A model generated the notes under the pieces. The model was given only the letters and a program-made list of their open reading frames with translations, searched no databases and was not told the origin of the DNA. Below are positions 1 to 35,217 of a DNA stretch of 64,000 nt, piece after piece (positions within the stretch are counted from its first letter, which is position 1; each line of letters opens with the position of its first letter). This DNA comes from Paragordius varius (lineage: Eukaryota; Animalia; Nematomorpha): positions 10,106,001 to 10,170,000 of the forward strand of contig OZ176050.1 of assembly GCA_964247055.1 (NCBI GenBank). Direction: 5' to 3'. A program made the translations under genes and the position numbers.

Positions 1-48
1 AACTTAAATAAATCATTTGCCAAATAAATTTCAATGAAATTTACCAAC

Positions 49-330
49 CTCTTTTCCAATCTTATGTTGTAATTTGCTTAATTCATATTCCTTTTTTAGG
101 AGGGAAAGAGACATGAGCAATCTTTGAGGTATATTCGTTTCTTCCATCACTTTTTGAAGTTCAACGCTATCGGCGGAAGTGAGAGTAGCACCCAAATCAG
201 CCAAATAAACTGGGTTATCGGTGACTCCGCCTATTCGAGTGTTTTGAAACAGTTGAGCCACACTTTCTCGATAAAGTGGATTTAATGTTATAATATCCCG
301 GATCGTTTTAAGCACTTCAGCACACAGAGC
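49..330 (-). CDS. LONP1: LONP1 exon 5; the gene continues beyond the left edge of the window
   Basis: aatatag|GCT acceptor. Encodes [24 protein letters not shown]...[56 protein letters not shown]. Donor gttggt at 48. Confidence 0.92.
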
Positions 331-352
331 CTATATTTTGGAATAATTGATA

Positions 353-356
<4 letters not shown>

Positions 357-390
<34 letters not shown>
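357..390. repeat. (TA)n microsatellite in LONP1 intron 4
   Basis: Direct reading. Confidence 0.95.
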
Positions 391-395
<5 letters not shown>

Positions 396-430
396 ATATC
401 ATATGTAAACTTTAAGATAAAAAAGATTAC

Positions 431-798
431 CTTAATTTCTTCCGTCATTCGGAATTTTTCATGGGAATAATTTTCAACTTCGACCATAAGTATTGGAATT
501 TTTGGGTTGTTGTGGATTGGACCTCCTCCGTCATTTGTCAAAGGATTATTCATTGTATTGCCGTTTTCTTCGAGAGTCACATCAAATGGTGTTTCAATAA
601 TCTTTTTCTTTTCTGGTTTTATTATGGAAGTTTCCTCTTTTTTAGCGTTTAAAGTGGTTTGAGTTGCACGACGCCAAGCCCTACTAGGTAGGCCATTTAT
701 ATTACCGAATAAACTCGATTTCAAACGTGGCGTTATAACTGATTTATCTGAGGAATTACGTTTGGCCCCTGAAGCAAAGCCGTTATTATTGTTGGTGT
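431..798 (-). CDS. LONP1: LONP1 exon 4 (variable linker, then ILMVEVENYSHEKFRMTEEIK)
   Basis: aaattag|AC acceptor is phase-1 compatible and in frame with ORF 392..724. Phase-0 donor gtaatc at 430. Confidence 0.85.
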
Positions 799-1265
799 CT
801 AATTTGTGGTTGATATTTATATATAATACAGGTTAATGTTTATGCTAGATGTGGTAAAAATGGTTAGTGCAGGGTAAAATTTACCATTGAAAAGAAATAG
901 GCATGATGCCAAATGTAATGAAACAACAAAAAAATATATGAAAATTAGTGCAATAAATTAAAAAGACAATATAAACCAAAATGTCCTGTCACACTCTTTT
1001 CTAGTACCTGGATACCAAAATGTTTCGAAAACTTCAAGATAGTTTTAAAAAAATGTTAGATTACTTCTTAGCACAAAAATTTCATAATTAAGCAAAATCC
1101 TCAACTTAAATAATATAAAAATCATAAGTTGTTATTGTTAAATTTTTGTTTTGATTTAGTAAAACGAAAAAACATTCAATATAATAATTAAAATAATTTA
1201 AGTGGGCTGCTATTATAAATTGTTGCCAATAATGAATAAATGCTTAGGTAAATTTAGTGATTAAC

Positions 1266-1432
1266 CTTGGGCTACATCTTCAATATCTTTGATCATATTT
1301 AATATCTTAATTCTGCGATGGGCCATAACTATCATTCGGATTTTATCGCCTAAATCCTGCATTTCGTGAATATGAACAAAACTTCCTACCCGGTATAAAT
1401 CATCCATATTGTATAAAATTTCATGTTCATTA
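1266..1432 (-). CDS. LONP1: LONP1 exon 3
   Basis: atattag|T acceptor. Encodes NEHEILYNMDDLYRVGSFVHIHEMQDLGDKIRMIVMAHRRIKIL. Phase-1 donor gttaa at 1265. Confidence 0.9.
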
Positions 1433-1457
1433 CTAATATTTATAAGCTTATAATTAC

Positions 1458-1546
1458 TTGTCATCTTTTTTCATAAATATACCGGCATAAGGTTGATTTA
1501 ATTTAATTTTTCGTCGGAGTAATTCAATTAAAAGTTTATTTGTCAC
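1458..1546 (-). CDS. LONP1: LONP1 exon 2 (89 nt; not in the ORF track)
   Basis: ataatag|GTG acceptor. Encodes [29 protein letters not shown], colinear with human [29 protein letters not shown]. Phase-2 donor gtaatt at 1457. Confidence 0.92.
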
Positions 1547-1572
1547 CTATTATGATTATTTAATTAATAAAC

Positions 1573-1851
1573 CTCTAAAATTTTTATAAACCGTGGAAAA
1601 AGTGGATTTCTGTTGACAGCAATTACTGGAACATGCGGATAAACTTCAGGTATATGCATGGGAGCTAAAGCCATATTTTGTGTGGTGTACATTGGTGGAG
1701 CTGAATCTGGAGGTGCGGATTTCTCACTTTCCTCAAATTCCGGTGGCTCGTCATTGTTTGATTTGGACGAAAAATTTCTTTGCGCTATCGTTCGGCGGAG
1801 AAAATTTGAATAATTTGATCTGAATAAATAAATTTGAAATCTTGCTAACAT
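1573..1851 (-). CDS. LONP1: Mitochondrial Lon protease, coding exon 1 (targeting peptide and start of LON N-domain)
   Basis: ATG at 1851. The Arg-rich, acid-free N-terminus [29 protein letters not shown] is presequence-like. It continues to [27 protein letters not shown], matching the Lon N-domain. Phase-0 GT donor at 1572. Confidence 0.93.
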
Positions 1852-10301: not shown

Positions 10302-11617
10302 CTGCAAATAATGTAATATAGTTAATAAAACCCATATAAAATCACACATACAAGTTTTTATATTTTAATACCATTTTATATACATAATTAAATCCAAAAT
10401 CGTCGCTTTTTAATATTGTCACTCTATAGCTTCATTTTAGCCTCCTAAAAACATATTAATACCTTAAATATAAGGTTTAACTACCGATATTTAGCTTGAG
10501 CAAGCCATACGTAAACAACTCAATTTTCAATTAATTTTGAATTTATTGAAAAATATACATAATTTAACTAAATTGTAGAATAATAATAATATATGGGATG
10601 TATGAATTTAAATAGTATAATTAATATAATATTATAATATATGAATTTTTAAAATGAGATTACGTTGAAGTACATGTTTGACATATCAGTTTTTGTTACA
10701 AAAAATATTTCATGTGAGATTATCAATAAGTAATCAAAAGTTTTATTAAGAAAAGTATAAATATATATATCAATGTAGATCCAAAAAATTCCGTCAAAAA
10801 ATGAGCACAAAACATTTGTTAAGGTTTTTTTGGTTGGCATTTATCATATATATTTGATCATCATCCATTGTGTATTCTAAATACAATTTTTTTGGATCTG
10901 TCTGTACATAACATTTGGCAACTTTGGAATTAAAATGGGAGGGAAGGGAATGATAATTAGGAAAAAGTATACATAATAAAAAAAACTGATTAGATAATTT
11001 AATGAGATTTCTGGTTTTTGATTTAGTGCGGAAGGGGAAAAACGACAAACCCTTTTCTCTGGTCAGAAAAACCCTGTGGCCAAACATATACTTATCCAAC
11101 GTTACTTTGTTAGTAATATGAGGAAATATTGGCTACCAATTAACCGGGAAATTTTTGTAAACAACGGGATACAAACTTTCTATCAAAATATATTGCATTG
11201 ACAAACAAAAATTATATAGGGATAAATATAAATACATGGAAAAATATTAACATATAAAAAATGATAGATTGTGAGAGTAACATATAAAAAATATGTATCA
11301 TAAAATGCCAATTAACAAAAATTTGGTCATTTTGCCGTGTTGTGCAGGAGTTATGGAAAATAAGTAGTGCTGAGGAGTGTATGGTATTTTGTACAAGATT
11401 GAAATTTGATCAAATTTGGTTTTGATTTAATTTTCATTCCCATTACGTAAGGAATGAAAATGTAAATGCATACAACCTTTTATAGTCCCTTTTAAGTTAT
11501 CAAAAAACTTTTCTTCAACAAACATATATCACACAAATTATGTATAAATATAAAAAAACAAATTCATTATAAAATAGATAGAAAAATGTTGGCGTTTGGA
11601 AAGTGTGTACGTATAAA

Positions 11618-11896
11618 TTATTTTGTTGAAGCTTGTATGAGCGATGGTAAGGATGGAAAGTTTTCAGTGACCGATCCATTGCTAGTTAGATAATTTGAGA
11701 AGGTTGAAGCACAACTACTAGCTAGCCTTTCATTCATATCACAATTTTCTGAGGATTCCGTTCTGTTGGAGGAAAGAGTTTGAGTTAGGGTAGAAGAAGA
11801 CGTTTTCATCAAAGGCTCCTTACTCTGATTTTTTTCATCTCCAATGGTTTCATTTGATGAAGGAATGTTTGAATAACATGAGACCACTGCAGACTT
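11618..11896 (-). CDS. CUX1: CUX-specific terminal exon 17a (ends ...LIQASTK-stop)
   Basis: attttag|AAG acceptor, in frame with ORF 11618..11887. TAA stop at 11620-11618. Confidence 0.75.
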   Translation of the reverse strand, partial: KSAVVSCYSNIPSSNETIGDEKNQSKEPLMKTSSSTLTQTLSSNRTESSENCDMNERLASSCASTFSNYLTSNGSVTENFPSLPSLIQASTK

Positions 11897-11961
11897 CTAA
11901 AATATTGTATACATATTATGTAAAATTTTAGCATTCATATTATTATTATTATTATACCAAC

Positions 11962-12168
11962 CTTGTCCAAAATGTGCTCGATGGGATTCTGATCACTGGT
12001 TTCCAATTTAAAGGGCGTGTTCCGTTTACGCTTAGAAGCGCCATTATTAGAACCAGAGGTAAGCTCATTCTGAGAAAGATTCATTCCATCTTGAACACTC
12101 GCATTGCAATTGTCATTCAAAGATACAGTGGAAGATTTATCATCTACTGAAGATGATCTGGAAGTTTT
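11962..12168 (-). CDS. CUX1: CUX-specific exon 16a
   Basis: attatag|AAA acceptor, in frame with ORF 11935..12120. Contains a basic patch KRKR. Donor gttggt at 11961. Confidence 0.78.
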
Positions 12169-12261
12169 CTATAATATTGTAAACAAAAAGAGATTATTAG
12201 GTAAAGTAAAATTGTTAATTTAAAATACGAATGAGAAAGTTTTCGTCTATATATTTCTAAC

Positions 12262-12677
12262 CTCTGATTTTTGCTCATGTGTTTGCATAATACACATGGG
12301 ATCAGTTGCATCTCGAGATTTATTTATCCGTGATAACGAATCCGAAATGGGACTTCCAATTTTGGATATGTTAAAAAATGGACTTTTCATCACATCATAA
12401 TTTTGTTGGGAAAGAAAATTTAGGAAAAAATCTTTCGTTGACATTGAGATATCGGATTCGTTGGAATTATTTTTAGAGTTTGCATTTAAAAGTGCTGATG
12501 ATATCTTTTCATTGTTTGGATCAGAAAAGGATTCAGACTTTAAGGATTCTGTAGGTGTTTGTACACTTTTTGCCGCATCCTTAGCTTTATATGATGGAGT
12601 GCTATTATTATTTTTAACAAATGGGGGATCAAATAGTGTGTTATGATTAGTGCAACTGCTATTGTTGTCCTTAATTG
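12262..12677 (-). CDS. CUX1: CUX-specific exon 15a (low complexity, no homeodomain)
   Basis: tttttttctttacag|CA acceptor is phase-1 compatible. Open frame continues into ORF 12247..12444. Donor gttaga at 12261. Confidence 0.82.
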
Positions 12678-12742
12678 CTGTAAAGAAAAAAATAGATTAT
12701 ATTACAATAAAAATAAAAAATATAAAAAGTTTTTTTACTTAC

Positions 12743-12887
12743 TTTTCTTTTTTTGTTTCCAACTCTTCAACTTTTCTATGTTGGAAGGATCATTCAACCA
12801 AAAATGCATGCGAATAAATGGTTCTCTCCCCTTTAGGCTTAACATGTGCCATGGTTTGGGTTTGGATAATAATTCGCTAACCGATCC
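12743..12887 (-). CDS. CUX1: CUX-specific exon 14a, second half of CUT repeat 3 (not in the ORF track)
   Basis: tgtttag|GGA acceptor. Encodes [48 protein letters not shown]. Perfect donor gtaagt at 12742. Confidence 0.95.
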
Positions 12888-13006: not shown

Positions 13007-13686
13007 CTGTGATAACCCAAGCACCGATTCCCCAAAAACTTTTTGCCCAATGTTGTAATTAACCAATATTTCTTTGATTCTCATGGTTAGCGTCAGAGTG
13101 TCAATATTACCAGACACGGCGGTGTATTCGAGCAAGCTATTAGATGGTGTAGATGTTACGCCTGATGGTGTAGTAGAAGAGCAGACAAAAGTTGGAACAG
13201 CCATACCATTACAATTTTTGCTAGAAATCTGATTTGGATTTAAAGTGTTGTTTGATGAACTCACAAAACATTTTCCCTTGTTGGAATTGTCAGTATTTGA
13301 TTTCGTAGTATTTGTAGCTGATAGAGTTGACGTTAGAGGTGATAATATGGAAGAATGAGAAGAGACATTTTCAGTTGATGGGGATGAAAAGCCATTTTGA
13401 TTTAAAAAGGTTCCATTTAAACAATCTTTGAAAGGATGGGATTGATGATTGAAACTATTTGCAATATTGGTATCAATTGGATTTGCTATCAAAAAAGAAT
13501 AAACATTACCATAGGCACTCATATGATGATCTTTAGCGGTAAATATAAAACACTTACATCCTTTTTTGTACATCAAATCATTCATAAGCTTGATCATAGA
13601 AGAAGCATCCAACGCCCTAGCCAACAATGGGTTTTTAACGTCATCTTGATAATCAGTTATTTGGTCTTTATCATCATTGGTTTTTT
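13007..13686 (-). CDS. CUX1: CUX-specific exon 13a, ending in the first half of CUT repeat 3
   Basis: attatag|AA acceptor, in frame with ORF 12995..13627. Ends IDTLTLTMRIKEILVNYNIGQKVFGESVLGLSQ. Donor gtagaa at 13006. Confidence 0.92.
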
Positions 13687-13751: not shown

Positions 13752-15530
13752 CTTTAAAAGCGTTATTTTGAAGATTGCTTTTTTCAACAAGGGGCGTAGT
13801 ATTAACTTTTTGAAATGATTGATTAGTAGGGGGGACTACTGATCCGTTCATAGATTTTTTAATTAATGAAGCAAGAGATGCTGCACCATTTTCATACGGT
13901 GTAATTGGAGGAGTTATAGTGTCTATGTTTAGGAAATGGGGAGGTGGAGTCCCACCACTCTGAACAGTGGTTGAAATCGGGAAGAATGGAGGTTTATTTT
14001 GCGTCAGTTGTTCATCCAAAAATAGTTGCATCCTTATAAATGGTTCTTTCCCTTTTTGGGTTAGGGATGACCAAGGTTTTGGTCTGGCTAATAAATCGCT
14101 TACTGACCCTTGTGAAAGTCCCAAAACCATTTCACCAAACACACGTTGACTTATGGAATATTTTGCTAGGTATTCTTTAACACGCCTTACCAATTCATCA
14201 GTGTTGATGTGGTTTGCATTATCTGTGGATGAGGGTGTAGCCTGGGAAGAACATGTGGATTCGGATACAGAACCATTCTTGGATAAGTTGCTGTTTTCAC
14301 CTTTTGAGGCACCATTATTTATTTTTTTACATGGTGGAACACTTAAATCTTTGGCTAACAAACGATTTTCTAGGCTATTTTTAGGGTAATTTTTACCTAA
14401 ACCATCGTTATTATTGTTTGATTCGGAATGTGTTAATAAAGTCATTTTATGGTTTTGGTCCTTTTGTTGTAGTTGATCATAATGATGCTGCTTGTTAGAA
14501 AGTGTGTTTTCAAACGCCTTGTTCGCATCTAAATCAAATTCAATTTCATCCGCATCTCGTTTCCGCTTGAGATTTAAACTCAAATTTAAAGGGCTCAAAG
14601 GGGAAGATGTCGCATTGTTCTCGTGACTAAAAAATTTAATATGAGATGCCTGAGTGGATGATGGTTGATGAAGAGTGGTTGTTGTTGTATAATAATGTTC
14701 CAAATAATCAAAATATTGTTTGGAATAATTTGCAAATGAATGTAAAGGATTATCAGGAATGCCATAATCTTTGTTTTCATGTGAGCTTTTGTCCGAATTA
14801 TTTGTCATTGGACTTTTAGCATTTTTATCAAGCGCTGCCATTAACAGTTTTAACATAAGCGATGTGGTTGATGAATCATCTATGCTTTTTGTTGTGTTGC
14901 AATTTTTAGTTAAGGCGGCAGACTCTAAATTTGGGAAAGGCGCCTTTTCATCAAGGGCACTTGTGGTAAAATTAGTCATATACTCTTTCCAAAACCGATT
15001 AAAATACTTGCCGGGGGCGATTTCATAATTATCATCCATTTGACTGGTGTTGCCTTTATTATTATATTTTGAAGTTTTGGAGATATTATCAGAGCTTTCT
15101 TTGTCTTCTCCAGCACTTTTATCATCATTGCCATTGTTAGGATCTGTATTTCGGCTTTGATGACAGTTATTATCATTATTATGATTAGTGTCATAATCAG
15201 TTTCCGCAATGACAAGAGGAGCAACATTTGTTTGGTTTGAGCATTGAGTTGTGTTGCCTTCGTCCGATTTTGAGTCGAAAGATGCGACGCCCGGGGATTC
15301 AAAACTATTATTTGCAGCAGAAATGACACAGGGTGTTGAAAGTAAGGACGGAGACAAAGTTGACGTTGCTGTTGTTGCTGGAGAAGTGTTGGTAGTAGTA
15401 CTAATATCTCCTCCACTCCCCAAGTTATTATAGCTACTGTGATTAAAATCTTGGAATGCTTTAAGTATGTTGTGTGAGGAATTGATAGCAATGCTTGTTA
15501 GGGCTGATGAGGCACCATTTATATCTTTGG
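13752..15530 (-). CDS. CUX1: CUX-specific exon 12a containing CUT repeat 2
   Basis: tatttag|CC acceptor, in frame with ORF 13723..15423. Contains [64 protein letters not shown]. Donor gtaaat at 13751. Confidence 0.93.
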
Positions 15531-16338: not shown

Positions 16339-18004
16339 TCTTTTTTGGGGTGAAAGTTTGCGATATCACTGGTGTTTTTATGGGAATGATCAGTGTCAAA
16401 AGAGAATTTTGATATCATGTCATTTTCACCACCGGATGATAAAGCATTAAATAAATGATGACTAGTTTGATTTATTGACTCATTTGAAATATATTGAAAT
16501 TGTTTGTACGTTGGATTTTGCACATTGGACTGGGATGTATTTTCGCATTTTTGATTATTTGTTACATCTGTTTTGCTATAACTGCATAGCAAATCAAATG
16601 TATTGCAATGGTCACGATTAAGATCCAATAGTTGACTTATAGTATTTGATTTGTTTTCGATGCCTCCTTTGGAAGAATTAACATAGTTATTCAAAAATAC
16701 GGGATCATTCATTAATTTTGTTGAGGATGGTCCCTTGTTACTCTTTGGTACCTTGTGATTATTATTACTTTTTGCTGTGTTTGAGAATTTTATATGGCTT
16801 TCATCTACATTCATAATGTTTTTTGTTTTATCAGCCATCTCTCTGCCATTTGGGTCAGAATATGAGAGTGCTTGTGCGGCGTAAAAATTTGGAGACACTG
16901 GTGATACACTTAATCCGGTTGAACTTGGTGCCAAATTAAACAATGTCGTAAAATCTAGAGCATTATTCGTTGGGTTTGGAGAGGCATCGTTGGCCATGTC
17001 ACTCTTGAAAAAATGACGGTAATAAAATGCGGCAGCCATACGTTGATAGGCCAAAAAGTTTTTATCCAAACAGGTGTCCCCAGATAATGAAGTGGGCAGA
17101 TTTTTACTGATGTTAGTGGTATTGGCAAAATTTTCGCTTTTGATTGCAGGTTTGATTGAATTATTTTTTGTGGAATCGCATGTTGTTTCGTCACAATCCA
17201 TATCTATTTTCACACAAGATTCATAGTTTAACGGTTTCAAACTAATCAAATTATTATTGTCATCACCAATACTATCGTTGCTATTATGAAATGCATGGGT
17301 ATTTTCTTGTAAAACTTTGGCTGATATGGAGTTGTTAACGTTATCTGAGGTGTCGGGAATCCGGTTGTCGCGATTAGAAAATACAATATCTTTTTCATTT
17401 TTATTGGATAACTTATTTTTACCCAAACTCACAATCTTGTTATTATCGTCCCTGAATTTGTCTCCTTTATTTCCAATATTTTGATTGTGTTTTGTAGAAT
17501 TAGAAGTGCCACCATTTAGATATTCAGGTAAGGCATAATGCCTCGCCCAATAATTTTCAGGGGATGATAAATTATTCATGATTGAATCAAACATGACTGA
17601 GGACTTTTGGTTAGATGATATTAACGTTTTATTTTTGGGTTCGTGAGATTTCATTCCCTTGTCCAAATTATCCAATATTTCTGGTTTCACAGCATATGCG
17701 TGCCATGATGCAAAATTTTTATTTAATTCTAGGGTTGTTACGATATCTGAATAATCAGTTTCAGGTTCAATTTTTATGTTGGGGAGTTTATTCAAAGAAT
17801 TGGGATAATTGTTTAGTAGTTCATTCTTTTCTTTTAAGGGTATACTAGTGTTTGCAGAAGATAATAAGGCACTAGAAGAAGATGATGATATTAATGTTGA
17901 GGAATTATTTGATTGAAAACAAGGTAATATCGATAAATTTGATGTTGCGTTTTGTATTGTCGTCGTTATTGTTGGTGCTGTAGCATTATTGAGAAAGGTA
18001 GCGC
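16339..18004 (-). CDS. CUX1: CUX-specific exon 9a (large N/S/T-rich low-complexity exon)
   Basis: The frame is open from 18002 into ORF 16335..17795. Phase-1 acceptor is either catgaag|GC (18004) or ctacag|CA (17977). Canonical phase-2 donor GA|gtgagt at 16338. Confidence 0.82.
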
Positions 18005-20712: not shown

Positions 20713-20892
20713 CAATAAAATTAAATGAAAATATATATAAATATATATACTGAAAGAATTAAAAAAGGCAACCTTTAAACTATTTGCAATTATAAAACAA
20801 TTTCGAATATGATTATTTCTCACCAAAAAACTTATTTTTTTTCATAAATTTGTTTATAAGTTTTTTTTTATGGAAAATTAATAAAAATTAAC

Positions 20893-21062
20893 CTGACAAT
20901 TGTTCATTCGTCATTTTCAAGTGATTGTTTTCATTTTTCAAAATTTTATTCTTTTCCATAACTACAACTTCCAAAGGTTTTTCTTTTAATATTGTGGATG
21001 ATTCTGACTCAGATCCATTAGTTGTCAAAGATATATCATTCAGTTCCATCGATTTGAAAACG
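20893..21062 (-). CDS. CUX1: CUX1/CASP last shared exon 8 (branch-point exon)
   Basis: gaatag|C acceptor. Encodes VFKSMEL...KPLEVVVMEKNKILKNENNHLKMTNEQLS (human ILKSMEF...[29 protein letters not shown]). Phase-1 donor gttaat at 20892. Confidence 0.92.
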
Positions 21063-21136
21063 CTATTCACACACACAATAGTTTTATAACCACTATAATT
21101 AAATGGCTAAGGAATAATTAAGCGTATAACTTAAAC

Positions 21137-21423
21137 CAGGGGTATTCAATACAAATGGCATGGTGGGCCGCATTTTAAACTGAGAATTCGAAAGTTGGGT
21201 ATCAAGAAATATATTATTTTGCACGCATAAGTTTGTAAATAAATTTACAAATACAATAGAAGCGCTATTTTTTTCACCAATTTTTGCAGTTCGGTGCAAT
21301 AATTGGGAAATACTTTTTCAGAAAATATCTCGAGAAAAATTTTATCAAGATAATAGCATTTTGTGCAAATTATAAAATATCGCTTTTATTTGGTAATTAT
21401 TAAGTCGCGTGTAGGACACCCTA
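21137..21423. mobile_element. hAT-type MITE in CUX1 intron 7, same family as 4609
   Basis: Left end CAGGGGTATTCAATACAAATGGCATGGTGGGCCGCATTTT resembles 4609 CACAGGTGTCCAACACAAATGGCTTCGCGAACCGCATTTT. Right end GTGTAGGACACCCTA is degenerate and I see no TSD. Confidence 0.5.
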
Positions 21424-21443
21424 AATTATGCTAAAATTCGTAC

Positions 21444-21625
21444 TCTAATTCCCGCTTGATGTTATCGTAATCACTCATAGTTGTTAATTTGGATTCCAGG
21501 ATGGTTAAATTTTGATCTTTTTCTGAGAGTAAACTTCTTAACTGATTCAAATTTTCTTGATTAGTTTTCTCCTGAACCTCAAGATGTTCTTTGGTTGATT
21601 TAATTTCATTATATAACTTTTGTAT
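21444..21625 (-). CDS. CUX1: CUX1/CASP shared exon 7 (not in the ORF track)
   Basis: ttttag|ATA acceptor. Encodes IQKLYNEIKSTKEHL...LTILESKLTTMSDYDNIKREL (human QADYEEVKKEL). Phase-2 donor gtacga at 21443. Confidence 0.88.
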
Positions 21626-21696
21626 CTAAAATTAAAATACAATATAATAACAATTATTTATTCATATATTGACCAAGTAAAATGAAAAATTATTAC

Positions 21697-21883
21697 TTCA
21701 TTATCCTTCAGAGTTATTTTTTCTTCCAAATGGGCTTTCATCGTTTCCATTTCTTTCAGCGGTGTATTTACTCTATTTTCGAGTCCTTCTGACGAGCTTA
21801 GGATTCTAAGTTGTCTTTCAGCATTCTCCGATCTTTGATTCAGCTTTTCAACATCCTTGGCTAACATATCAATTTCATAATTT
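21697..21883 (-). CDS. CUX1: CUX1/CASP shared exon 6
   Basis: catag|A acceptor. Encodes NYEIDMLAKDVEKLNQRSENAERQL...EEKITLKDNE. Donor gtaata at 21696. Confidence 0.88.
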
Positions 21884-21952
21884 CTATGAGGCACATAAAA
21901 ATATATAATTGAGATTGATAGAATATGAATATATAACAAACTAAATATGATC

Positions 21953-21974
21953 AATATATATATATATATATATA
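21953..21974. repeat. (TA)n microsatellite starting at the exon 5 splice donor
   Basis: Minus strand reads GCAAA|gtatatatat... Confidence 0.95.
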
Positions 21975-21975
21975 C

Positions 21976-22175
21976 TTTGCCGATATGTCCTGGTCATATT
22001 TCGATTTCAAGTCAAACAATTGACCATTGACCGTATCAAAAGATTGGTGCAAGCCTTTCAACTCATTCTGCAGACGGTTGATGGTTTCATTCAGCCCTTT
22101 TTGTTCTTCAAGCAATTGCTTTTCCCGTTCACTGAAGGTGGCAGACATATCACTGTGTAGTTTTGACGTAATCTC
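21976..22175 (-). CDS. CUX1: CUX1/CASP shared exon 5
   Basis: tatag|GAG acceptor. Encodes EITSKLHSDMSATFSEREKQL...QLFDLKSKYDQDISAK. Phase-2 donor gtatat at 21975. Confidence 0.9.
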
Positions 22176-25034
22176 CTATATACATATGTAACATAAAAAA
22201 ATATATCATCGGTAATAATGTGATTGAATATGCAATTGACGGGATAATAAAAGTGTTTGGAGTGGGGCAGTTAAAAAAACAAAAAAACCATCCACACATA
22301 TATTGTATACCATGGCAACATAAAAGTCATAAAATTAATTTGTTATTGCAATAATTACGATTATGATCATGATATGGCTATTAAGAGACGGACGCTGAAG
22401 TTTAAAATCCTTTTTGATTTTATACAGCGTGTGCAACAAAGGAAACAGCTAAAACCTATAAAATACAATTATTGTGCGTGAAGCTATAAATTTCTAATAA
22501 TTAATAGATCTGCTAAACTATTAAACAAAACCATAAATATCGTCAATAAATAAAATTATTACAAACTCATGGTAACTGAAATTACTTATAAAAATTTTCT
22601 CCCATACAAACTTTTTAATCATTAAACTACTATATTTTTTGTCTTTTTGCATAAGTTAAAGCACGGAGACAAAAGCTTTTTTAATCAATGCAATCTAAGA
22701 TGTCAATATATGATTAATTATGGGTAGCACAATAATTATGTAGATTTAGATCACAAAAACTATGCCCCATAACCCTGCTTATCGTTTTTGCTTTAAAATC
22801 AATTTCCATATTAAGAATCTGTATTATCGTTTTTGATAACAAAAATTATTGAGAATTGATCAATAAAAACCTAATTGGCTGGCAGTTTTATAAATCTTAA
22901 ATCATAATTGAACCAAAAACGGGAAATAACTTAAATACAGTTAATCTCTATCAAATTTTATACATTCACATGCGCATGGCTTTCAAATAAATTATAGGTA
23001 TCAGAGTAAATAAATTTTATAATATTTCAAATCTGATGCAAGAGACACTACAAGATGGGAAGTGGTGGCAAAGTGTCATTTTAAATTATTTCTAATATTA
23101 AAAGAAAAACAATTAAGTATTTATATATTTTTTGACTTTTTATGCTTCATTTAATCAAAGAATCATCCTCATCATCATAATATCCAAATTTGATTTAAGA
23201 TGACATACTAAAAGGAATGGGAAAGAAATTTTTAAGCATTTTATCCATTACAGTTTGACCACACTCTATAATATTATTGTGAAAGAAAAGAGCAAGCTAA
23301 TGCGATGATGATAATAAAAGCTATTATTTAATTGCTTCCTTTTATCTTCTTTCATTAATTGAATACGGACGATTTAAGGAATATAGTAAAAACGATGGTT
23401 TGATTATCGTTGTAATTAGCCACAGCTATGATATGGTGACAATTTTTTGGTTAAAAGTGATACTATATTCCACCACATTTCCCCTTCAACTTTTTTAACT
23501 TATTCCATTACTGATATATAATTTACAAGGAAATAGCAAGTCATAGACTGAAAGGCTCAATAAATAATGTGTGCTATAATATTTTTGGAGGGGTTCATAG
23601 AGAACAAAGGATACTTATCTATTATTATCGTCTTTCAACTAATTGATATTATTTCATTTTAATATTGTTTATATAAAATATCAACCAACCATATAACATC
23701 TTAAATATCTTTGAATGAAAAGTATATATACGAATACCACAGATAAGATTTACAATGTTTTTCATTAATGATAATAACATACACACACATTACTAAATAT
23801 AATTGGAAGGATGATCTGTCGTCATTTTTTTCTTGAAACAAAAAAGGGAATGTCTAATACAATACAATACAATAAATAATCCCTAAATTTTCTAAACTGA
23901 GGTTAATGTATGTTTGTAGCACCATGAGATTTTTTTATTTCAATACTTAAAAAGATGGACGGACAATAGATATTTTGGCGACATAAAAGGCATAGATAAA
24001 TATCTATATAAGGATATATATTATTTTGAAAGCTCAAATTCCAAAATTCAAAACTATTTTCCCCTCTGTTGCAGATTTTAAAAAGATAAATAAAATGATC
24101 GGATCGGTATGATGCCAAAATTTCATTTATTTAGTTTGAAACAGTGTGCCATCAATCTAACTTACATACACCAAAAATATTTTTTTCATACAGATGAAGA
24201 TAATCACAGCCATAAAATCTAATCAATAAATGTTAATCCATTTATCGATAATTCAATTATCAAATTAGCTTGTGTGCTTGGTAGAAAAAAATGTGAAAAG
24301 CGTACGGATAGATATAAAAACTAAAAAAACATTCTTAGATTTAAATTGCTTTTTTAGAAACAACTACAAAATCGCAAATCAATCGTAAAAGATTTAACTC
24401 CAAACAACAACGAGCTTAAAATTTTTTTGAAATCAAATTTTTATAGTTTAATCCTTACATCATAGTTTATGTGCGAATATAAATTGAAATATGGGATATT
24501 ACAATTTTTTTAGTAATACCCGCATTTTGTCAAAATTTCCCCCCAAAACTCGTATGTTTCGGGAAAAGAATGAGAAAATCGATCAATGCTTTGTTCAAAC
24601 CTAGTCTTAAAAATAGTCATTATGAAAATAAAGGTAATAAAAATTAAAATCTTTTTATTCTAATGCACACATATAAATTAAAAAATCTAAATTTTTAGGA
24701 GGTAGTACCATTCATCTTAATTAATTTTTATTTTATAAAATGATAATTTGAGTGAATATCTATCTGCATTCGTTTTCCATCACAAAATGTGAAATCAAAT
24801 ATAACCATATACATAGCTAAAATTAACGCAATATAGGTTTAGCAGTTCCAGTCAATAAAAAAGGTCAGAAAGTGAGATCATAAATATTATATTATAACTC
24901 TTTAACTGTGTTGTTTATGAGCTGTAACAGAAAAAAACTATATAAAAATATATTTTTTTCTCCCGGTTGACAGTTTGAGGATCCAATTAAGCCAGCACAA
25001 TAATATTAATTTTTATTGTTTTTATATTTGTGGA

Positions 25035-25038
<4 letters not shown>

Positions 25039-25084
<46 letters not shown>
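25039..25084. repeat. Compound (TA)n-(GATA)n microsatellite
   Basis: Direct reading. Confidence 0.95.
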
Positions 25085-25085
<1 letters not shown>

Positions 25086-25421
25086 TAAAGACAAATTAAC
25101 TGAAATATCTCTCTTTAAATGATCTTAATTCATCACACACACCACACACACATCACAATTAATTTGAAAGGATGGTGCCTGCAGGAAAAATCATAAAATA
25201 TTTAATTTTTTAACGCAAACCAATTATTCCCAATTAAAATTAATTTTTATTATCACCAACCGACAGAGAAATATTTATAAATTTTATGATTATTTAAATT
25301 ATGTGGGATATAAAACTCTAATAAAAATTGAAGCGAGACGACATCATAAAGCCAAATATCAAACTAAATTTTTACAAATAACGCGCAATATAGCACAATA
25401 GCAAAAAAAACTAAAACAAAC

Positions 25422-25627
25422 CTCAGTTAAAGTTTGAATGTTGGATTCGCTTTCTTTCAATTTAAGTTCCAACTTTCGGCATAGTTCTTCAAAATATTTG
25501 GCTTGAACCAACTCATGATTGGTGTTTGTGAGCGTTTCACGTAATTGTTGATTTTCAATTTCAAGGTCTTGCGCCCTCTGATTAAATTTTTGTGCCTTCT
25601 CAGCCTGATCAATCAAGGTACCAGGAT
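25422..25627 (-). CDS. CUX1: CUX1/CASP shared exon 4
   Basis: gttttag|AT acceptor. Encodes DPGTLIDQAEKAQKFNQRAQDLEIENQQLRETL...ESNIQTLTE. Donor gtttgt at 25421. Confidence 0.9.
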
Positions 25628-26913
25628 CTAAAACAAATTATTTAGCAGCCTTAAAAAAAAGTTATTTATCGCTAAAATTAGTTGTTTAAAACTTGTTCAG
25701 GCAAGGGTGAAGAAAATCAAAAATTATATTTTTTTTCTTAAACATATAATGGCAGAATGAATTTTAGGTGAGCAATGGATTTAACACAAAATAATAATTC
25801 ATCTTCACATTGTTTGCAATAAAGGGTAAAATTGAGTTAAACATTTTGGTGCACGAGATATATATTTTTTAATATTAGGTAATAATCAATTATTTAAAAC
25901 CATTTAATAAATATCCTGCACTACAATCTTGGAGTTTATTTGTTCGTATTTTTATGCAAGGTTGTGCGAAACAAAATAATAGGTGGCCCATTACTAAATA
26001 TGGTAATTCCCAATCAATCCGATTTAATTGTTAATCTTTTTAAAGTGGTGTTTGTGTATGTTTTTTACAATTTTTATTTTTACAACACAAAAATTTAATT
26101 TAACAAACACTAGTATAATTTTCCATTAGAGTTGAAAAATATTCTTTCAGGAAGGATACTATAACGATTTATTGTAAAGGGAAAATAAATTTTAATTAAT
26201 ATCCAAATTCCTTACTATTTATTATAAAGAAAATCACCGTCAATTATAGCTTTAAATCTTCCAGCCAGGCGCACTAATATTATTTAGAGATTAAAAATTA
26301 TATTTATAAATGTTATTTTTTTCAATTATATAATTATAGTTTGTTTTAAAGGATATATTTTTGATATTGGTCATTAGACAGATCAAAAGAAAGTTATATA
26401 TATATCGTTCTAATTCCCTGTGCACACATGATATATTTTTTATATCGGTCTTTCTTCGGTCGCTAATAATCATTTTTATTCTTATAATTTTTTTTTCTTC
26501 TTATGAATGAAATAAACCAAAGTAAAAAAAATGACAAATCTAATTGAATTTTTTGATTTATTAAATATTTTTTGTTAATTAAAAATGATGCTTTGGCACT
26601 ATTAAACCGTTACCCCCGAAACAACTTAACCAAATTTGTGCCAGACATATAATTATACTTGATAAAGATAGGCATTCATCTGTGTAAAACTCCAACTTTC
26701 AATATTAATTAATATTCAAAGAATACATAGGAAAGTAGGTAAATGTTGAGTACAAAAACTTGAAAACTGCAATAAATATGCATATTTCTGCATATTGTAC
26801 ACTCATACACACCACAAGACTAGAGAAAGTTATATATATTTATAAATATAATTAGGATAGTATGTACATGTAAATAAAAAGTATCGTTTAAAATCAAAAT
26901 CTAATTCACAGAC

Positions 26914-27040
26914 CTGCAAAATCAATAATTTGTTTGTAGACTGAAAGGAAGGCTGCTTCGGCCGCTTTGCTACGTTTTGATAGGGAATCTATTTCTTGTT
27001 GAAAGTTCTTAAACAAGGGCGCTACACATTTCCGAATATC
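26914..27040 (-). CDS. CUX1: CUX1/CASP shared exon 3 (127 nt; not in the ORF track)
   Basis: Encodes [42 protein letters not shown] (human [42 protein letters not shown]). AAG acceptor; phase-1 donor gtctgt at 26913. Confidence 0.93.
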
Positions 27041-28379
27041 CTTCACAACATGATACAAACAAATAAACACAATTTTATAATATGAAAATAAATGTCATTT
27101 TTTGTTGAAAGATGGTTAAGAGTCATTTTGTAGTATTTTAATACTATATGGCTCTTCCCGAATTAATTATATGGAGAACACCCAACGACTTTTTGCGGTC
27201 ACTAAAAAAAAAATTTAAGATTTTGTGTGGTAAAATTTGATTCAAAAAAACTGGGTAAATAATTAAATTGATTGCGACAAACAAATTTGGATGTTAAAAA
27301 ATCGAGAAAATAAATGATATAGAATAATAATGTTTGGACACCAACATAAAATATGTGGATTTTAAGAATATTTATCCAATATAAATTTGTTAGCCAAAAT
27401 AAGGGGTTAATAGAATCATTAGTTTTTATCAAAACTAAATGTTTCAATACAATACAATATAATATAAATTAGAAATGAATATGATATTCTATAAATATAT
27501 AACTGATAAGAGCAAACAATAATTAATAACAGTGAAATATCATAAATAATATATATAGTAGCCGTTTACACTTAAAAACTAACTTATTTAAATTAATTTG
27601 CAAAATATTAAGTATGGGGATAATTTTTGATATAAAGATATCTAGTTGATTTAAAATTTTGATAATATGCAAAAACATCAGATAGCACGAGTTGAAATAT
27701 ATGTTATTAAATTGAATATAAATTTTTGAAACAAACTCTGACAAATTTATATAATAACCATAACAGATACAATAAACAAATTAATAAAAATTCCCTTATA
27801 AACCATTCACAATATATCCATCTATCTATCTATCTTCTTTTGGCCAACGTAATATGCATAAGGCCTAAAAATAATAGATTTTATCCATACACATTCAAAT
27901 TAAATTTTATTTTATATTTTTTTAAAATTTAATATTTCCTGATTTATTAATTCAACTTTCATGCGATAATCAAACGCATTTATATTATAAAAATTAAACT
28001 GTAGTTTTAAATCTCTTTAGGCCAGAATTTGTATATGGTGGTCAATTTTTCTCAATTTTATAGTATTATATGTATCAGATATTTAAACAATTCGAGCGGC
28101 ACTAAAATTCAAATTATGCCATCAAATGATGAACTTTACAATAAAGCTAAATTAGTTTTATAGAAGCTGGAAGCCTTGTAGTAAGGTGAAAATGTGGAGT
28201 AGCCACCATAATTTGGTTAAATAATGAGACAAATATTTTCGTGAGCTCAATTTAATAAGGTGATGTTATGCTACATTCGTCATTTACTTTAATTATACAG
28301 AATTCGGCAAGTGTTAGAAAATCATAATGGATATTAAACCATTTACATTTATTTTTAAACATATCATGTCATCAGTAAA

Positions 28380-29050
28380 AAGGAATCACCCCCTCAATTT
28401 CGATTTTCAAATTGTCAGTTATAAGCGCAACTCTGCTCTTAATTCCCATCGTTTTGAGGCTTTCACTTATGTGTCATTAAAACATGTCGCCACCTTCATC
28501 TCTGACCCTACACTTGAATATCAATTTATCCTATCCTATCTGTATCCCAGAATTCGACAGTTTGTTATACTTTTTTCACTTCATCCTTCTTGATATGAGG
28601 ACTCAATAACGAGTGTCTGATGTATTTTTTTCTTCCATGTTTTGCGGTTGTAGGCGTCTTTAACATCAATTTTTCGTTCCTCAAGATCTTCTGTGATTGC
28701 TTTGTGCCATGTTAAGGGACACTACCTCTTTTATATATAATTCATAATGTTGACAAACATCATCTATTCGCTCAATGTTTCCTAACCAGCTTAGTTTTCT
28801 GGTTTGGATTATATGATCAATTTGATCTATTTGAATTGCGTGGGCGTCAAAGTTATTATTGAAATAAGATTTTTCACTATTCTATTTTTATATCTGCTTT
28901 TAACAATACTTCTAATAAATTTATTTTTTCCTGGAATATTTTTTACTCATCAACCTATCCATTCTCATATTTGCTACATTAAAAAAAGGCAAATCAATGC
29001 AACTTATACATCCTGGTTGGCTGAATCAACATAACTCTATGTCTATGCTT
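28380..29050 (-). mobile_element. Two adjacent RTE-like LINE 3' remnants
   Basis: RKLSWLGNIERID (28800-28762) and KR*CPLTWHKAITEDLEERKIDVKDAYNRKTWKKK (28730-28625); a second piece reads CRILGYR*DRIN (28559-28524). Confidence 0.7.
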
Positions 29051-32000
29051 CTGTCACTCAACATTTTTGTCGCATTTATTTTCCGATTAAACCAAATTTT
29101 TATAAATCTTACTTTTAATAATCTGTTATATACAAAACTTAAATTCATGTCATTTTTGAAATTTTTAATTGTACGTACAATCTAATTACTTAATCAGTAA
29201 ATAGTTGTTTTTTAGGTCGATTTCGGACAAAATTTATTAAAAAAATGCAACATTTACACAGTTAATTAGACAATTAAAAAAATAATTTCATTTTATCACT
29301 AGCAATTATATAACGATAATATTTACAATAATAATTAGGTGAAATGGTAAAATAGCGTATGGTTAGAAAAGTAGGACAACAAACATCCATTATAAGCGCA
29401 TAAATAATAAATATAGCCTTTTCAAGATATCTCAAAATTTTTGAAACTATAAATTCGTTTAAGATATTTTTATCAAATAAATTTGATGTAATTTTAATAC
29501 TGATAATTTTTTGGTGAGGCAAAGTGTCTTATTTTGTAAAAAAATTTAAGAAAGATATTTTTATTTTAATAAATATTTAAATGATATATACAAATATAAT
29601 ACTCCATAATTTTTTGGTTGAATAAATTTTATAAATTAAAAAAGTAGGCCATCAGCTTTAATAATGATAACAAAAATGTGGAAATCATTCATACTACCTC
29701 AATGATTTTTAAATATCAATCCTTATAAAAATTTATTTTTAAATTTAGATTTTCCTTGTAGATTTGGGTCAAAATTTAGATTATTTGTTTTTACTGTTTT
29801 AAAAGGTTGACTCTATGTTTTTCACGACGTTCAAAGTATTTAAAAAATATTATTATTGCTTGCTAATATAAAATATTATTAGAAAGCAGGACATAATAAA
29901 TAGTCATTTTAAAGTAGACCAAGGACTTAAATTTTGTTATCTATCATTCAAAGAAAAAGTTTTTAAATGACCGTTTTAATCCTTAATATTTTAATACTTT
30001 ATAATGAAATATATAATATTTTAAATTTAGCATATTTAATTTAAAAAAATTAATATTCAATATTTTATTTTGTAAAAGTTAAACTTATATTTTTGTATAC
30101 CTTTTAATCGACACACATTTAAGTCGGGTTTGTAAATACATTAATGACCGCGACTGGTATCGATCTTAAAATAACCAGTCAAAAACTTTTAAAAATTATT
30201 TATATACCATAATTAAAATTAAAAGTTTTAAAATTTATCAAATTTTTACTAATTGTAATGATATATTTACAATATTAGGAAAACCAATTTAAATGGTAAA
30301 TTTACATAAATTGCAATGATATATTTATATTATTAACAAATCAATTTAAATGGTTAATCTAGTGTTTGGACATTTGTGTAATGATGATATATATAACCAT
30401 ATAACTGTATTAGTAGTTAAACCGGTAATTATTTTTAGATATAGAAAAACCAACCCGAATTATGAGTATATGTCTAATTTTTTTAATTTAAGATAGGTGA
30501 ATTTTATAAAAATATTGCAATTTGTAAATAAATTGAAAATTAAAGATAATTTTAACTGCTGAATAAGATAAAGTTTGATTGAATCTTAAAATTCTTTTGT
30601 TACAATTTCTACGACCATGCTTAAAAGAAATGTTTAGTTTAATAGGTTAAATATGGAGTTTATTGCATTGTAAATCACACAAATTAATAGAAGAGTCAAC
30701 AAAGTTGGATATGAAAATATAAACAGCCACAACCGCATTATTCAGATTTGAAATATTCAGATAAAATAATTTAAAAGAGTTAATTGTATGTACTGTAAAT
30801 AATTATGTTTAGCAGATTGGATTACTATTTGAGTGAATAAACTGTCTTTTAAAATCTAGAAAAATTATTTTAAACATAAAGAAATTTGGCCAATTTATTA
30901 ATTAAAAATTTAATTTAAGTAAGCAAGTAGAAATAATTATTAATAATAATTAATGTTATTGATAAAAATATGTTGAAAAAAAATGTAATCCCATAAAGAA
31001 AATCAAAAGAAAACTTACTATAAAATACACCAAACTTATGTTAGTATCTTCCGTAATCCCTCAAAAAAATTGTTCAAAAATATTTTTTTAATTTTATTAA
31101 AATTTAGACTAATTAAAATTTACAACTGAACAAGAACTTTGAAATTCTTGTGTCAAAATCTTAATTAGCCATTCGCGTAATGGCAAAGAATGTTTTGAAA
31201 GATTGAAAATATTCGCTAATACTTATTAAAGGTTACCTAAGGATATTTTTTATCAAATTTTACTTAACTGAGTTGGTTAATCTAATATATATTTAATTCA
31301 AATAAAAAAATCTTTTTTTTGAAGTTGCATACTCTAATGTGATTTATAAGTTATACGTATTTATTTTATTGGACTATAAATATATTCTGTAACTTTTTAA
31401 TTGTATTAATATTTTTGAAAAAATAAAAATTCTCATCTCAAACACTTTTCCGCGAAATATTATTTGCAATGTTGACCATAAATAGCAAATATATTTGAAT
31501 ATTAAAATGCTTAGTTAACTTAAATAATTATATATTATGATTCTCAATTTATTAAAAAATGTAAGGTTTATTTCATCATTTAAAGAATTTTAATTTTTAA
31601 ATGTATAATTATATAAAAGTAATATAGAGAAATTTTAAATATATAATTAAAATATCAAATATTTTTAGAAGCCGCTATATATTTACCTTTTTTACGATTC
31701 TTAAGTATGCAAAATTTTATTTATGTGTAATTAAGCGACAATTATGGTTGTCCCTTTTAATATTATAAGTTTTGATTGTGCTTGGCCTTTTCATATTTAT
31801 TAAGAAAATTCTACAAAATATAATAGATTTAAAAGTGAAAGAATACTTTTCCACCAAAAAATTCATTAGTCATAACTTAAAAAACCACCAATAATCAAAA
31901 CATCTCTCGTATTCTATAACTAAAATACAATATATTAGGCGCAGAAAAAGTCCGAGGTTAACCAAACCTTTTTTTCAATATTGTTAAGTAACAATGAAAG

Positions 32001-33374
32001 AGGCGAGAAGAAAAAATAATTCGTCCCATGAATATTAATTTAAATATATTACCATAATTAGTATATGCCAACATAGGATATATATTTATAATTAATATTT
32101 AGAATAGGCACAGAAGCGTAAACCAATTATTCAATATTGTGTTCAAAATATAATATTAATTACTTTTGAATATTGCATAAGCATTTTTTTTGTATCATAT
32201 AACAAAACATAGTGTTATTTTTCTGACAAACTTTTCGACATTAACATTTTTCCTTGGTGGTAAGGGGATGCAGATCAACTTGTGAATATTTTAATTAATT
32301 TCTTAGAATACGGTCCACCAACAAAGATACTTACTGTAAAACTTATTTTTAACAAAATTGTATTTAAATATTATTATTATTATTATTGAACTATTAAATA
32401 GGGTTGATTTGAGAAAAATAAAATAAAAATCTCTGTTATTGGAAATCATATTCACTCTACCCCTCCAACAAAAAAGCAAAACAGTCGATTTTATTAAAAA
32501 TATTATATTTTTATATATAGTATAATATTTTAAATTGGAAATATTAAATATTGTGTAGCTTGCTATATTTCGAATAATCTGATAAGGACAGTTTAGGGTA
32601 GTTTTATACCCCAAAGCCATTTTAAATAAAAATATCTTAAAAAATATTTATAATATAAGCCAAATTTAAAATTATGTTATCTTTTTTTAGGCATACAATT
32701 TTTTTAAAAATGTAAAATTTTAAAAACTCGTATAAATTTTTTCATCGCCATTATTTGCTTTAATTTTTAATTGTGAATACAACATGCAAAACACTGCATA
32801 TTTTGGTTGAAAAAATACAATTAATTGACTTTGGAAAGCTTTCAAATTGCAATTTACCAGCAAATGTTTGATATTTATTTATTTTTATATCAGCTGTTCG
32901 TTCAGTGGAGCTATCTGAATTTGAGATGTAGGAATTTGAAACTTTAAGAATTCTATGTTTTTTATCAAATACAAAAGAAGAGGATAATAAAATTTTCAAA
33001 ACAACTTGTAAAACAGTAGTTTGTTCATTAGTTTAAGCTCTGGGGTCAAAAACTCCTTCCGAGGACAAAAAATGAAAATGTAATGAAGTCTTTAAGTTAT
33101 TATTACCTCCGATATTTCGGTTTGGTATGCAGGGGAAAATTAAAAACTTTAATTTATTTTGGATAAATAAATGTAAATTTTACTTCATCTTTAGGTGCGA
33201 CTTATTTTGAACGTTTATAAACAGACTTCTTTGCTTATTTTTCAATAATAAAAATAGTTTCAATAATACATAACCCTATATTTTCCAAAACAACGTAGGT
33301 GCATTAAACCAATGTTTATTAAAAAACTTTTTATATATTGATTGCAATAATTAATCATTGAGAAAATAACGGGC

Positions 33375-33641
33375 ATATACCATTCAAAACTCAAATTCAC
33401 ACTTGAACAGTTAAATTCACCTCAAACAATTCAAAGTCACCCTAAAATAAATTAAGTTTTTTTTAAGATTAAAAATTACCTCTATTTTATAATATTATTA
33501 AATTATAAAATTCTGTTTAAAATTAGTATAATGCTGAAAAAAGAATTATGTCGTAAAAATATATTATCCCGAAAACACATAATTTATTTTTAGGGTAAAT
33601 TTGAATTGTTCAAGGGTGAATTTAAATTGTAAATGGTATAT
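33375..33641. mobile_element. MITE with long imperfect TIRs
   Basis: ATATACCATTCAAAACTCAAATTCACACTTGAACAG...CCCTAAAATAAATTA is mirrored by TAATTTATTTTTAGGG...TTCAAGGGTGAATTTAAATTGTAAATGGTATAT. The left arm has an extra ~20-nt subrepeat. Confidence 0.6.
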
Positions 33642-35177
33642 TTAGCGCCAGATACATAGTTCACCACCATATTTGTCATTTGCTCTTTGATATTATGAGT
33701 TTTGAGTAAGATAAACTTTCTAGTTTTATATGGCACAATCATTTTAATCTAACATGATTTCAAATTATTTAGATTGAAAAAAAAAATTTAAATCACATAT
33801 ATGTAGATCCAAATATATTAATATTCTGACACAACAAATACATAAATTATTAGATATATATATATATATATACAAAAAGTTAAGAATAAATTAAAATAAA
33901 TAAATATATTGAACATTTTGACACCCGTATCTCAATCTATCTATCTAGAATATGTTTCACACATTAAAATATTTTAGTAATTATATATGTTTTTTCAAAT
34001 CAAATGTATGTGACCATCAGTTTATGCAAATTAATATTTTTCACATACCAGATATTGATCAATCAAAAATTTCAGTAAAAAATTTCTAAATCTATATTCT
34101 GACTGAATATTTAGAAAAATGTGGAAATAGATTGGGGAGATAACACATACACAAAAAAAGATTAATTAAAATTAAAATTTTAATTTAAATGCACTGAATG
34201 CAATGCAGCAGGCGACAAAAATACTAAATCACAAAATTTATGGTTTTTACATATAATTTGTATAATTGTTTATTGAAAAAAAATTGTAATTAACGCGCAC
34301 GGATTATTGTAAAATTATGCCAACCACAATCAATAAGGAAGGACATGCAATCTAAATATTTCCATTTTTAGTTATCAAGGGACATTTAAAATTTAAATTA
34401 TTTTGCTTAAGCCACCGATATTTTTGGGTCTATAGATATTTAACATCCACATTATCATGAATTAACAACTTATATTTACGTTAATATCGTTACATCAAAA
34501 ATATATCAAGGGTGGTCGACTTCTTTTTAAAATATTACGTCGCTTAACATTAGTGAATAATTCAATAATTCTTAATTTATTTAATAAAAATAAATAATTG
34601 AAGAACTTAACCACTTAATTTCTCATCATAAAAATTAATAAAAGAAATAACCTTTTTATTCGCATAAATTATTTAGACATAAACAAAGTTAAGAAAAAAA
34701 TATAGATTAATATAAATATATTTGCATGTGTTTGCATATATTTGCATTCAAGACACGAATTTTAATCATCAGTTTTCCCCTATATATCAAAAAAACAAAA
34801 TTTAACAGAGGGGACATGATATATATACAGTAATGAATAATAACTAACTATAGATTGTTTCAAAAAAATGTCCACAAGAAAAGAGGTGTCTCACACCACT
34901 GATGAAAAGTGGTCAAAGTTTTAGCCTATAATTTTGATCCTTATCAAAATATACATATTCCAATTATTTTCTAATTTATATTTTTGTATATATGTATATG
35001 TCTACATCTTAATTTTAATATATTTGCTCCACACACCACTATTCATCACACAATGTCATCCATCCTTTCATTATTCAAAGTTTGGTTATATAGTATTTTG
35101 TTAGACACCACAAAATAAATTAATTATATGTGAATAAATTCACAAATTATATATAATCAGCAACAAAGTAAAAGTTT

Positions 35178-35183
<6 letters not shown>

Positions 35184-35212
<29 letters not shown>
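35184..35212. repeat. (TA)n microsatellite
   Basis: Direct reading. Confidence 0.95.

Positions 35213-35217
<5 letters not shown>

Follow-up and report, generated by a model that had tools for sequence, protein, structure and literature searches.

Proteins of the CUX class are textbook multi-domain transcription factors, in which stable DNA binding is attributed to the third CUT repeat (CUT3) together with the homeodomain (HD). In the canonical members, Drosophila Cut, C. elegans CEH-44 and vertebrate CUX1 and CUX2, the HD follows three CUT repeats. In known CUX/CASP genes, the N-terminal coiled-coil exons are common to the CUX and the CASP products. [quoted passage not shown]

Binding of the related protein ONECUT2 to DNA is begun by its CUT domain and stabilised by its HD (PMC11490551). 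Full-length CUX1 displays rapid but transient binding and represses by competition, and stable binding to ATCRAT has been described for shorter CUX1 isoforms devoid of the N-terminal region and CUT1 (PMC7272708). The CUX1 form p150, in which the HD is impaired, is reported to lack DNA binding and to function as a dominant negative (PMC7272708). CUT domains alone are able to stimulate OGG1 (PMC5386666).

Here we describe the CUX/CASP locus of the hairworm Paragordius varius, which lies in an AT-rich 64-kb stretch of DNA (the window; GC 26.6%). Our main reading, to which we assign a probability of about 75%, is that this is a single CUX/CASP locus whose transcription-factor branch has lost the HD and ends after CUT3 in a coding tail.

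Layout of the locus and its CUT repeats

The locus retains the ancestral layout: the minus strand of the window carries N-terminal coiled-coil exons, followed by CUX-specific and then by CASP-specific exons. The exons encoding the CUX1_N and CASP_C domains were found on one strand and in this order, which is the mark of a CUX/CASP gene with two products, and the CASP-specific exons lie downstream of the CUX-specific ones as in nematodes and amphioxus (PMC10515288). The features are as follows.

20885..35429, minus strand: N-terminal coiled-coil exons (tblastn with CUX proteins; Pfam CUX1_N)
35429-35286, 27052-26918, 25634-25416 and 22163-21975, minus strand: N-terminal HSPs (tblastn), approximate limits
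21885-21694, 21625-21446 and 21088-20885, minus strand: N-terminal HSPs, continued (tblastn), approximate limits
16339..17795, minus strand: large low-complexity CUX-specific exon, a 486-codon open frame with a GT donor at 16338
16212-15905 + 15838-15686, minus strand: CUT1 in two exons (Pfam CUT), with a 66-nt intron after ...ILG
13752..15530, minus strand: CUT2 exon, with CUT2 at ~14214-13996 within long Ser/Asn/Thr-rich linkers
13007..13686, minus strand: exon with the first half of CUT3 at its end, closing with ...LGLSQ (Pfam CUT; frame checked)
12743..12887, minus strand: second half of CUT3 (Pfam CUT), ending in the basic run KQKKK
10335-10126, 7836-7714, 7442-7137 and 7087-6938, minus strand: CASP-specific 3' exons (Pfam CASP_C), approximate limits
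1..1851, minus strand: start of LONP1, the next gene (start codon at 1851), which delimits the CUX/CASP locus on the 3' side

At the N-terminal end, CUX1_N (PF25398) scored 49.9 bits on 26918-27052. CASP_C (PF08172) scored 14.7, 31.5, 59.8 and 48.4 bits on 10126-10335, 7714-7836, 7134-7430 and 6938-7087, respectively, and the last CASP-specific exon (7087-6938) encodes a membrane anchor. The LONP1 open frames 1564-1851, 1261-1464 and 31-315 were read as the Lon presequence and N-terminal domain; the N-terminus is presequence-like, and the gene runs off the start of the window.

Nine exons with GT-AG borders, running from 17795 to 11618 on the minus strand, form a single frame with one stop after 1807 codons. 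The eight introns of this chain measure 126, 66, 155, 65, 119, 65, 93 and 65 nt. The large CUX-specific exon at its beginning matched no Pfam family and is in frame with the exons after it; its boundary at 17795 is set by the extent of the open frame and not by a mapped acceptor. Inside the exon upstream of CUT3, a 72-nt segment (GTAAGT...TTTTTTGATAG; 13557-13486, minus strand) lies in frame, and since the frame is kept whether the segment is retained or spliced, it may be an optional intron.

The three CUT repeats that characterise the CUX subclass were all found with Pfam (PF02376). CUT1 gave 23.9 bits (profile positions 6-35; 15879-16229) and 54.2 bits (positions 32-73; 15633-15863) for its two parts, and CUT2 gave 93.8 bits at residues 404-476 of the 566-codon open frame 13723-15423. 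For CUT3, the scores were 29 bits (positions 3-38) for the first half, on 12995-13627, and 53.4 bits (positions 38-76) for the second, on 12738-12887. The recognition-helix motif LSQG[TS]VS[ED]LL..PKPW is intact in all three repeats.

CUT2 is 72-77% identical to its counterparts in arthropod and mollusc CUX, and the second half of CUT3 is 82-89% identical to that of flies, wasps, spiders, scorpions and snails, the value of 89% being reached with spider CUX. Each CUT repeat had its positional counterpart in CUX proteins as best match. The top matches of both protein searches were three-repeat CUX proteins, which points to orthology with CUX and not with ONECUT or SATB; those that were named came from insects, spiders, molluscs and vertebrates and are annotated as 'homeobox protein cut(-like)'. 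In the segment 14300-14480, the pre-CUT2 motif SPLQRMQSI...LPP[VI][ST]QEQF[DE][KR]Y, conserved in many CUX proteins, could not be recognised.

Search for a homeodomain and properties of the tail

The helix-3 pattern W[FY]xNxR was absent from all six frames of the whole window, and relaxed patterns returned noise only. Pfam searches at E<=10 with the tail pieces and the sizeable open frames between 12.7 and 10.8 kb yielded nothing but CUT3. When CUX proteins (first 120, then 253, of which 78 have three CUT repeats plus an HD) served as tblastn queries against the window, CUT1-3 and the N-terminal and CASP exons were matched, and an HD never was.

A profile was also built from 77 CUX homeodomains (the CUX-HD profile) and run with filters off on the 4233 stop-to-stop pieces of the six frames. 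The best hit in the window had an E value of ~4, and the tail pieces all scored below 0 bits, under conditions where the positive controls gave 107.4 bits (Priapulus, locus L003), 96.8 bits (Steinernema, L004) and 98.0 bits (a genome from ENA, L002). Micro-introns of 22-28 nt could alter details of the tail model, though they could not conceal helix 3 from such a local six-frame search. The distance between CUT3 and the HD is no more than ~1-2.5 kb in each of the control loci. In P. varius, the CASP exons (10335-6938) and then LONP1 (from 1851) leave no room for an HD downstream. The HD that marks the CUX subclass, as well as homeobox genes of any class, is thus absent from this locus; the gene is a CUX orthologue by descent, and by definition no longer a homeobox gene.

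The sequence that follows CUT3 has these features.

12677-12262, 12168-11962 and 11896-11618, minus strand: tail exons (splice sites, frame), with the stop codon at 11620-11618
12022..12033, minus strand: basic motif KRKR in tail exon 3 (exon 12887-12743 being counted as the first), read from the sequence
10336..11617, minus strand: non-coding 3' flank of the CUX product (GC 25%, indels), which would be intronic for CASP

Counting from exon 12887-12743, the tail introns measure 65, 93 and 65 nt and have AG/GT borders. The tail comprises 300 residues after CUT3, of which 40% are Ser, Asn or Thr and 21% hydrophobic, and it contains no Trp. With stops at a frequency of 0.084 per codon, one is expected per 12 codons at this composition, and the probability of finding open runs of 139, 69 and 92 codons by chance is ~5e-6, 2e-3 and 3e-4, respectively. 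The GC content is 33-40% in the exons, 12-20% in the introns and 25% in the 3' flank. No Pfam family matched the tail at E<=10, nothing was recognised in it by a language-model search of a protein atlas, and word searches with the largest tail exon and the CUT3a exon found no homologue within the length range covered. We read the tail as fast-evolving yet still coding, and presumably disordered.

These results bear out what an earlier note had read from the letters of this DNA. The exons 12887-12743, 12677-12262, 12168-11962 and 11896-11618 that it had proposed were confirmed in their AG/GT borders, frame and single terminal stop, as were the three intact CUT repeats (all found by Pfam) and the Ser/Asn/Thr-rich low-complexity character of the tail up to that stop. 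Its statement that no helix-3 WF.N.R motif follows CUT3 agrees with the six-frame motif search and with the tail being devoid of Trp, and for the interval between 12743 and the CASP exons, where it had seen no WFxN-type segment, the motif, Pfam, tblastn and CUX-HD profile searches concur. The homeodomain HMM search that it had suggested, carried out here with Pfam and the CUX-HD profile on the pieces of the window, returned no HD. Its proposal that the HD was lost while the CUT repeats stayed conserved is supported at the level of this genome, CUT2 and CUT3 being 72-89% identical to those of other phyla.

The KRKR motif is a candidate nuclear localisation signal, judged by its sequence. Canonical CUX proteins have basic runs in the segment that separates CUT3 from the HD (KRRR or, within the arm of the HD, KKPR). 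We considered a vestigial HD around KRKR and dropped the idea, as the CUX-HD profile gave no signal and no statistical support for homology between the surroundings of the motif and the HD arm. A 112-codon open frame at 10797-11132 (minus strand) was likewise rejected as a hidden exon, since it matched no Pfam family and contains frame-breaking 1-nt and 2-nt indels (10887, 10903); it is unusually long for its composition, and probably non-coding. No Pfam family was found in the open frames of the 3' flank (10336..11617).

Five sequencing runs matched the stretch. They behave as DNA, with introns evenly covered and no splice joints, and their loose ends start with GATC, which is typical of Hi-C libraries. 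In runs presumed to be RNA, no words of the stretch were matched. Contigs of four of the DNA runs were placed on 10100-16099, divided into thirty 200-nt bins. X1, X2 and X4 (three runs from two samples) covered 30/30 bins, and the fourth run (a third sample with another organism label, ~5x) covered 26/30. The only structural joint listed was a low-depth, opposite-strand joint in the fourth run. An assembly gap or error between 10300 and 12750, named earlier as a possible objection, is thus not borne out: the contig cover is even, and the better-covered runs showed no structural joint. A loose end at 10124 in three runs was set aside as an edge effect, its letters matching 10084-10113.

The variant figures rest on 40 of the 238 substitutions and 12 of the 35 indels. 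Among the variants listed, the tail had 8 silent and 8 replacement changes, replacement sites making up 79% of its sites, which gives a pN/pS of ~0.27 (one-sided binomial P=0.01). Both variants listed inside CUT2 were silent, and the linkers of the CUT2 exon had 9 replacement and 3 silent changes among those listed. All 12 indels listed (10100-12900) fell in introns or the 3' flank; the positions given are 10887, 10903, 11375, 11559-11609, 11921-11927 and 12218. Since the tail variants favour silent changes and the listed indels lie outside the exons, the tail is coding and the gene is not decaying. As evidence for coding constraint on the tail, we regard the listed variants as supportive rather than conclusive.

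Two further observations were made on the contigs. The X2 and X3 haplotype has five deletions (3, 7, 1, 9 and 2 nt) at 11559-11609, the first of them 8 nt past the stop, and the adjacent coding exon has substitutions only, so that a sharp boundary of constraint coincides with the predicted stop. In X4, two contigs depart from the reference at 11934-11955, in tail intron 3, one of them carrying 255 letters that differ from it and have no match elsewhere in the window; either an insertion polymorphism or a break of the contig at the (TAA)n-like run could account for this.

CUX proteins of other phyla

When the 566-residue CUT2 exon was compared exhaustively by phmmer with 1.84 billion representative proteins, no likeness was found outside the CUT domains. 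Of the 29 matches that were named in the various searches, none was from a hairworm. In the nearest outgroups available, Strongyloides, Syphacia, Steinernema and Priapulus, the HD is present in all, which indicates that its loss in P. varius is derived. The CUT3 intron after LGLSQ has the same position in Priapulus CUX. In the annotated CUX of Priapulus caudatus (L003; KQ715436.1), the model omits the second half of CUT3, passing from ...LGLSQ directly to the exon with the HD; the locus contains 2403 N, and the skip is probably due to the assembly gap. An AT-rich contig from ENA (P0230, at locus L002) was examined as a possible relative and rejected, as it belongs to a compact, unrelated genome with a normal HD.

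A CUX without HD proved less peculiar to this lineage than the earlier note had implied. Predicted CUX proteins with three CUT repeats but without an HD were found in Neoechinorhynchus agilis (Acanthocephala; KAL7669517.1), in Paramacrobiotus metropolitanus (Tardigrada; RefSeq isoforms X1/X2, XP_055345699.1 / XP_055345708.1) and in Schistocephalus solidus (Cestoda; UniProt A0A0X3NK60 and A0A0X3NVB4). By Pfam and the CUX-HD profile, these proteins resemble that of P. varius in having three CUT repeats and a tail (175-335 residues) without an HD. The N. agilis tail, of 335 residues, is Ser/Asn/Thr-rich like that of P. varius and contains the basic motif RRKR in place of KRKR. No HD was found within 10 kb downstream in the N. 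agilis locus (L001) or in that of P. metropolitanus (L005), where the next gene lies 1.1 kb downstream. A transcript-like 4.35-kb Logan contig of the Schistocephalus cluster (L006) contains a complete open frame without an HD.

The three species belong to unrelated phyla, and their tails have no detectable similarity to that of P. varius; these would thus be independent losses. Our literature searches found no paper describing a CUX with the CUT repeats kept and the HD gone, and the proteins of N. agilis, P. metropolitanus and S. solidus have apparently gone unremarked.

Other proteins retain parts of the HD. A 620-aa protein from a JGI metagenome (P0032) has three good CUT repeats and, at residues ~505-557, a degenerate helix 3 (...STWLHHGQMR; 6.9 bits with the CUX-HD profile); from its sequence it looks like an intermediate stage of HD loss. 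Schistosoma proteins keep the CUT repeats and a weak HD at the Pfam threshold (22.8 bits), and Pomphorhynchus CUX retains an HD fragment.

Homeobox surveys have scored Cux as lost in flukes and the monogenean Gyrodactylus (PMC4040987), and in dicyemids, where only Onecut is listed (PMC6543705). These are likewise fast-evolving, mostly parasitic lineages with no Cux in HD-based surveys. The surveys infer the loss of the whole gene from the missing HD, and persistence of the CUT repeats was not asked; in P. varius, by contrast, the gene persists and only the HD is gone. Surveys that count homeoboxes report 'Cux lost' where perhaps only the homeobox is gone, so that parasites may have lost fewer developmental regulators than such counts suggest.

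Alternative explanations and comparison with known CUX proteins

An HD could persist outside the window, as a result of mis-assembly, translocation or a very distant 3' exon, and be spliced to CUT3 in some transcripts, the tail then belonging to only one isoform. The 3' ends of the CUX product are predicted from DNA alone, which is in favour of this explanation, but we consider it improbable: the CASP exons come immediately downstream and LONP1 after them, the DNA cover is even and free of structural joints in the better-covered runs, the control loci all have their HD ~1-2.5 kb from CUT3, and the coding constraint on the tail exons indicates that they are used. About as improbable is that only the CASP (Golgi) product is functional, the CUX-specific exons being a relic that is unexpressed or in decay. 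The CUX product, too, is a prediction from genomic letters, and the long linkers are near-neutral, with the 9 replacement and 3 silent changes listed outside the CUT2 domain. Against this stand ~1800 codons that are open where a stop is expected every 12, the 72-89% identity of CUT2 and CUT3 to distant phyla, the exclusively silent variants listed in CUT2, the tail pN/pS of ~0.27, and the fact that no frame-breaking exon indel is listed.

We regard as least probable, and very unlikely, that an HD-like fold survives in the tail, diverged beyond detection by sequence. Gradual decay of the HD does occur elsewhere, as the helix 3 of the metagenome protein (...WLHHGQMR) and the weak Schistosoma HD suggest, and the KRKR motif of the tail resembles an HD N-terminal arm. 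The composition of the tail, without Trp, poor in hydrophobic residues and rich in Ser, Asn and Thr, speaks against such a fold, as does the failure of the HD profile, Pfam and the language-model search to recognise it in any tail piece. We thus favour the reading that the transcription-factor branch of the locus has lost its HD.

The expression, nuclear location, DNA-binding mode and function of the HD-less product we infer as follows. The likely product would be a protein of the nucleus that combines a coiled coil with three CUT repeats, in which the coiled-coil N-terminus would give oligomerisation and the KRKR motif (12033-12022) may serve as import signal. Since each repeat retains its recognition-helix motif, contact with DNA via the CUT repeats is likely. 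Without the clamp of an HD, binding would be fast but brief, as in the competitive repression known as 'CCAAT-displacement'. The CUT repeats could also have HD-independent roles, such as stimulation of base-excision-repair enzymes or service as a scaffold, either alone or alongside fast on/off binding to DNA.

We put forward tentatively, at less than even odds, that loss of the HD with all three CUT repeats kept is a recurrent, selected outcome in fast-evolving lineages, here a hairworm, an acanthocephalan, a tardigrade and a cestode. Were this true, the conserved core task of CUX would be an HD-independent CUT function (such as transient DNA binding by competition, or assistance to base-excision repair), and several published 'Cux family losses' would be losses of the HD only, from a gene still at work. 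An HD-less CUX under purifying selection is a natural experiment on the action of CUT repeats by themselves. In practice the finding is of modest use: in this genome the gene should be annotated as a CUX orthologue and not as a homeobox gene, and four lineages are indicated for comparative biochemistry.

Compared with canonical CUX, the P. varius gene has the same CUX1_N and coiled-coil exons, the same three CUT repeats in the same order and a basic run after CUT3. It differs in having, in place of the HD, a 300-residue low-complexity tail, in its very long inter-repeat linkers (~1800 CUX-specific codons), and in the absence of the LPP[VI][ST]QEQF motif upstream of CUT2. A parallel is mammalian CUX1 p150, which likewise keeps the N-terminus and CUT repeats and has no working HD (PMC7272708); by analogy with it, CUX lacking an HD might fail to bind DNA altogether. 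However, p150 is a C-terminally processed, proteolytic product of an HD-bearing protein, found in one tissue, and is dominant negative against HD-bearing forms, whereas in P. varius no HD-bearing form appears to exist.
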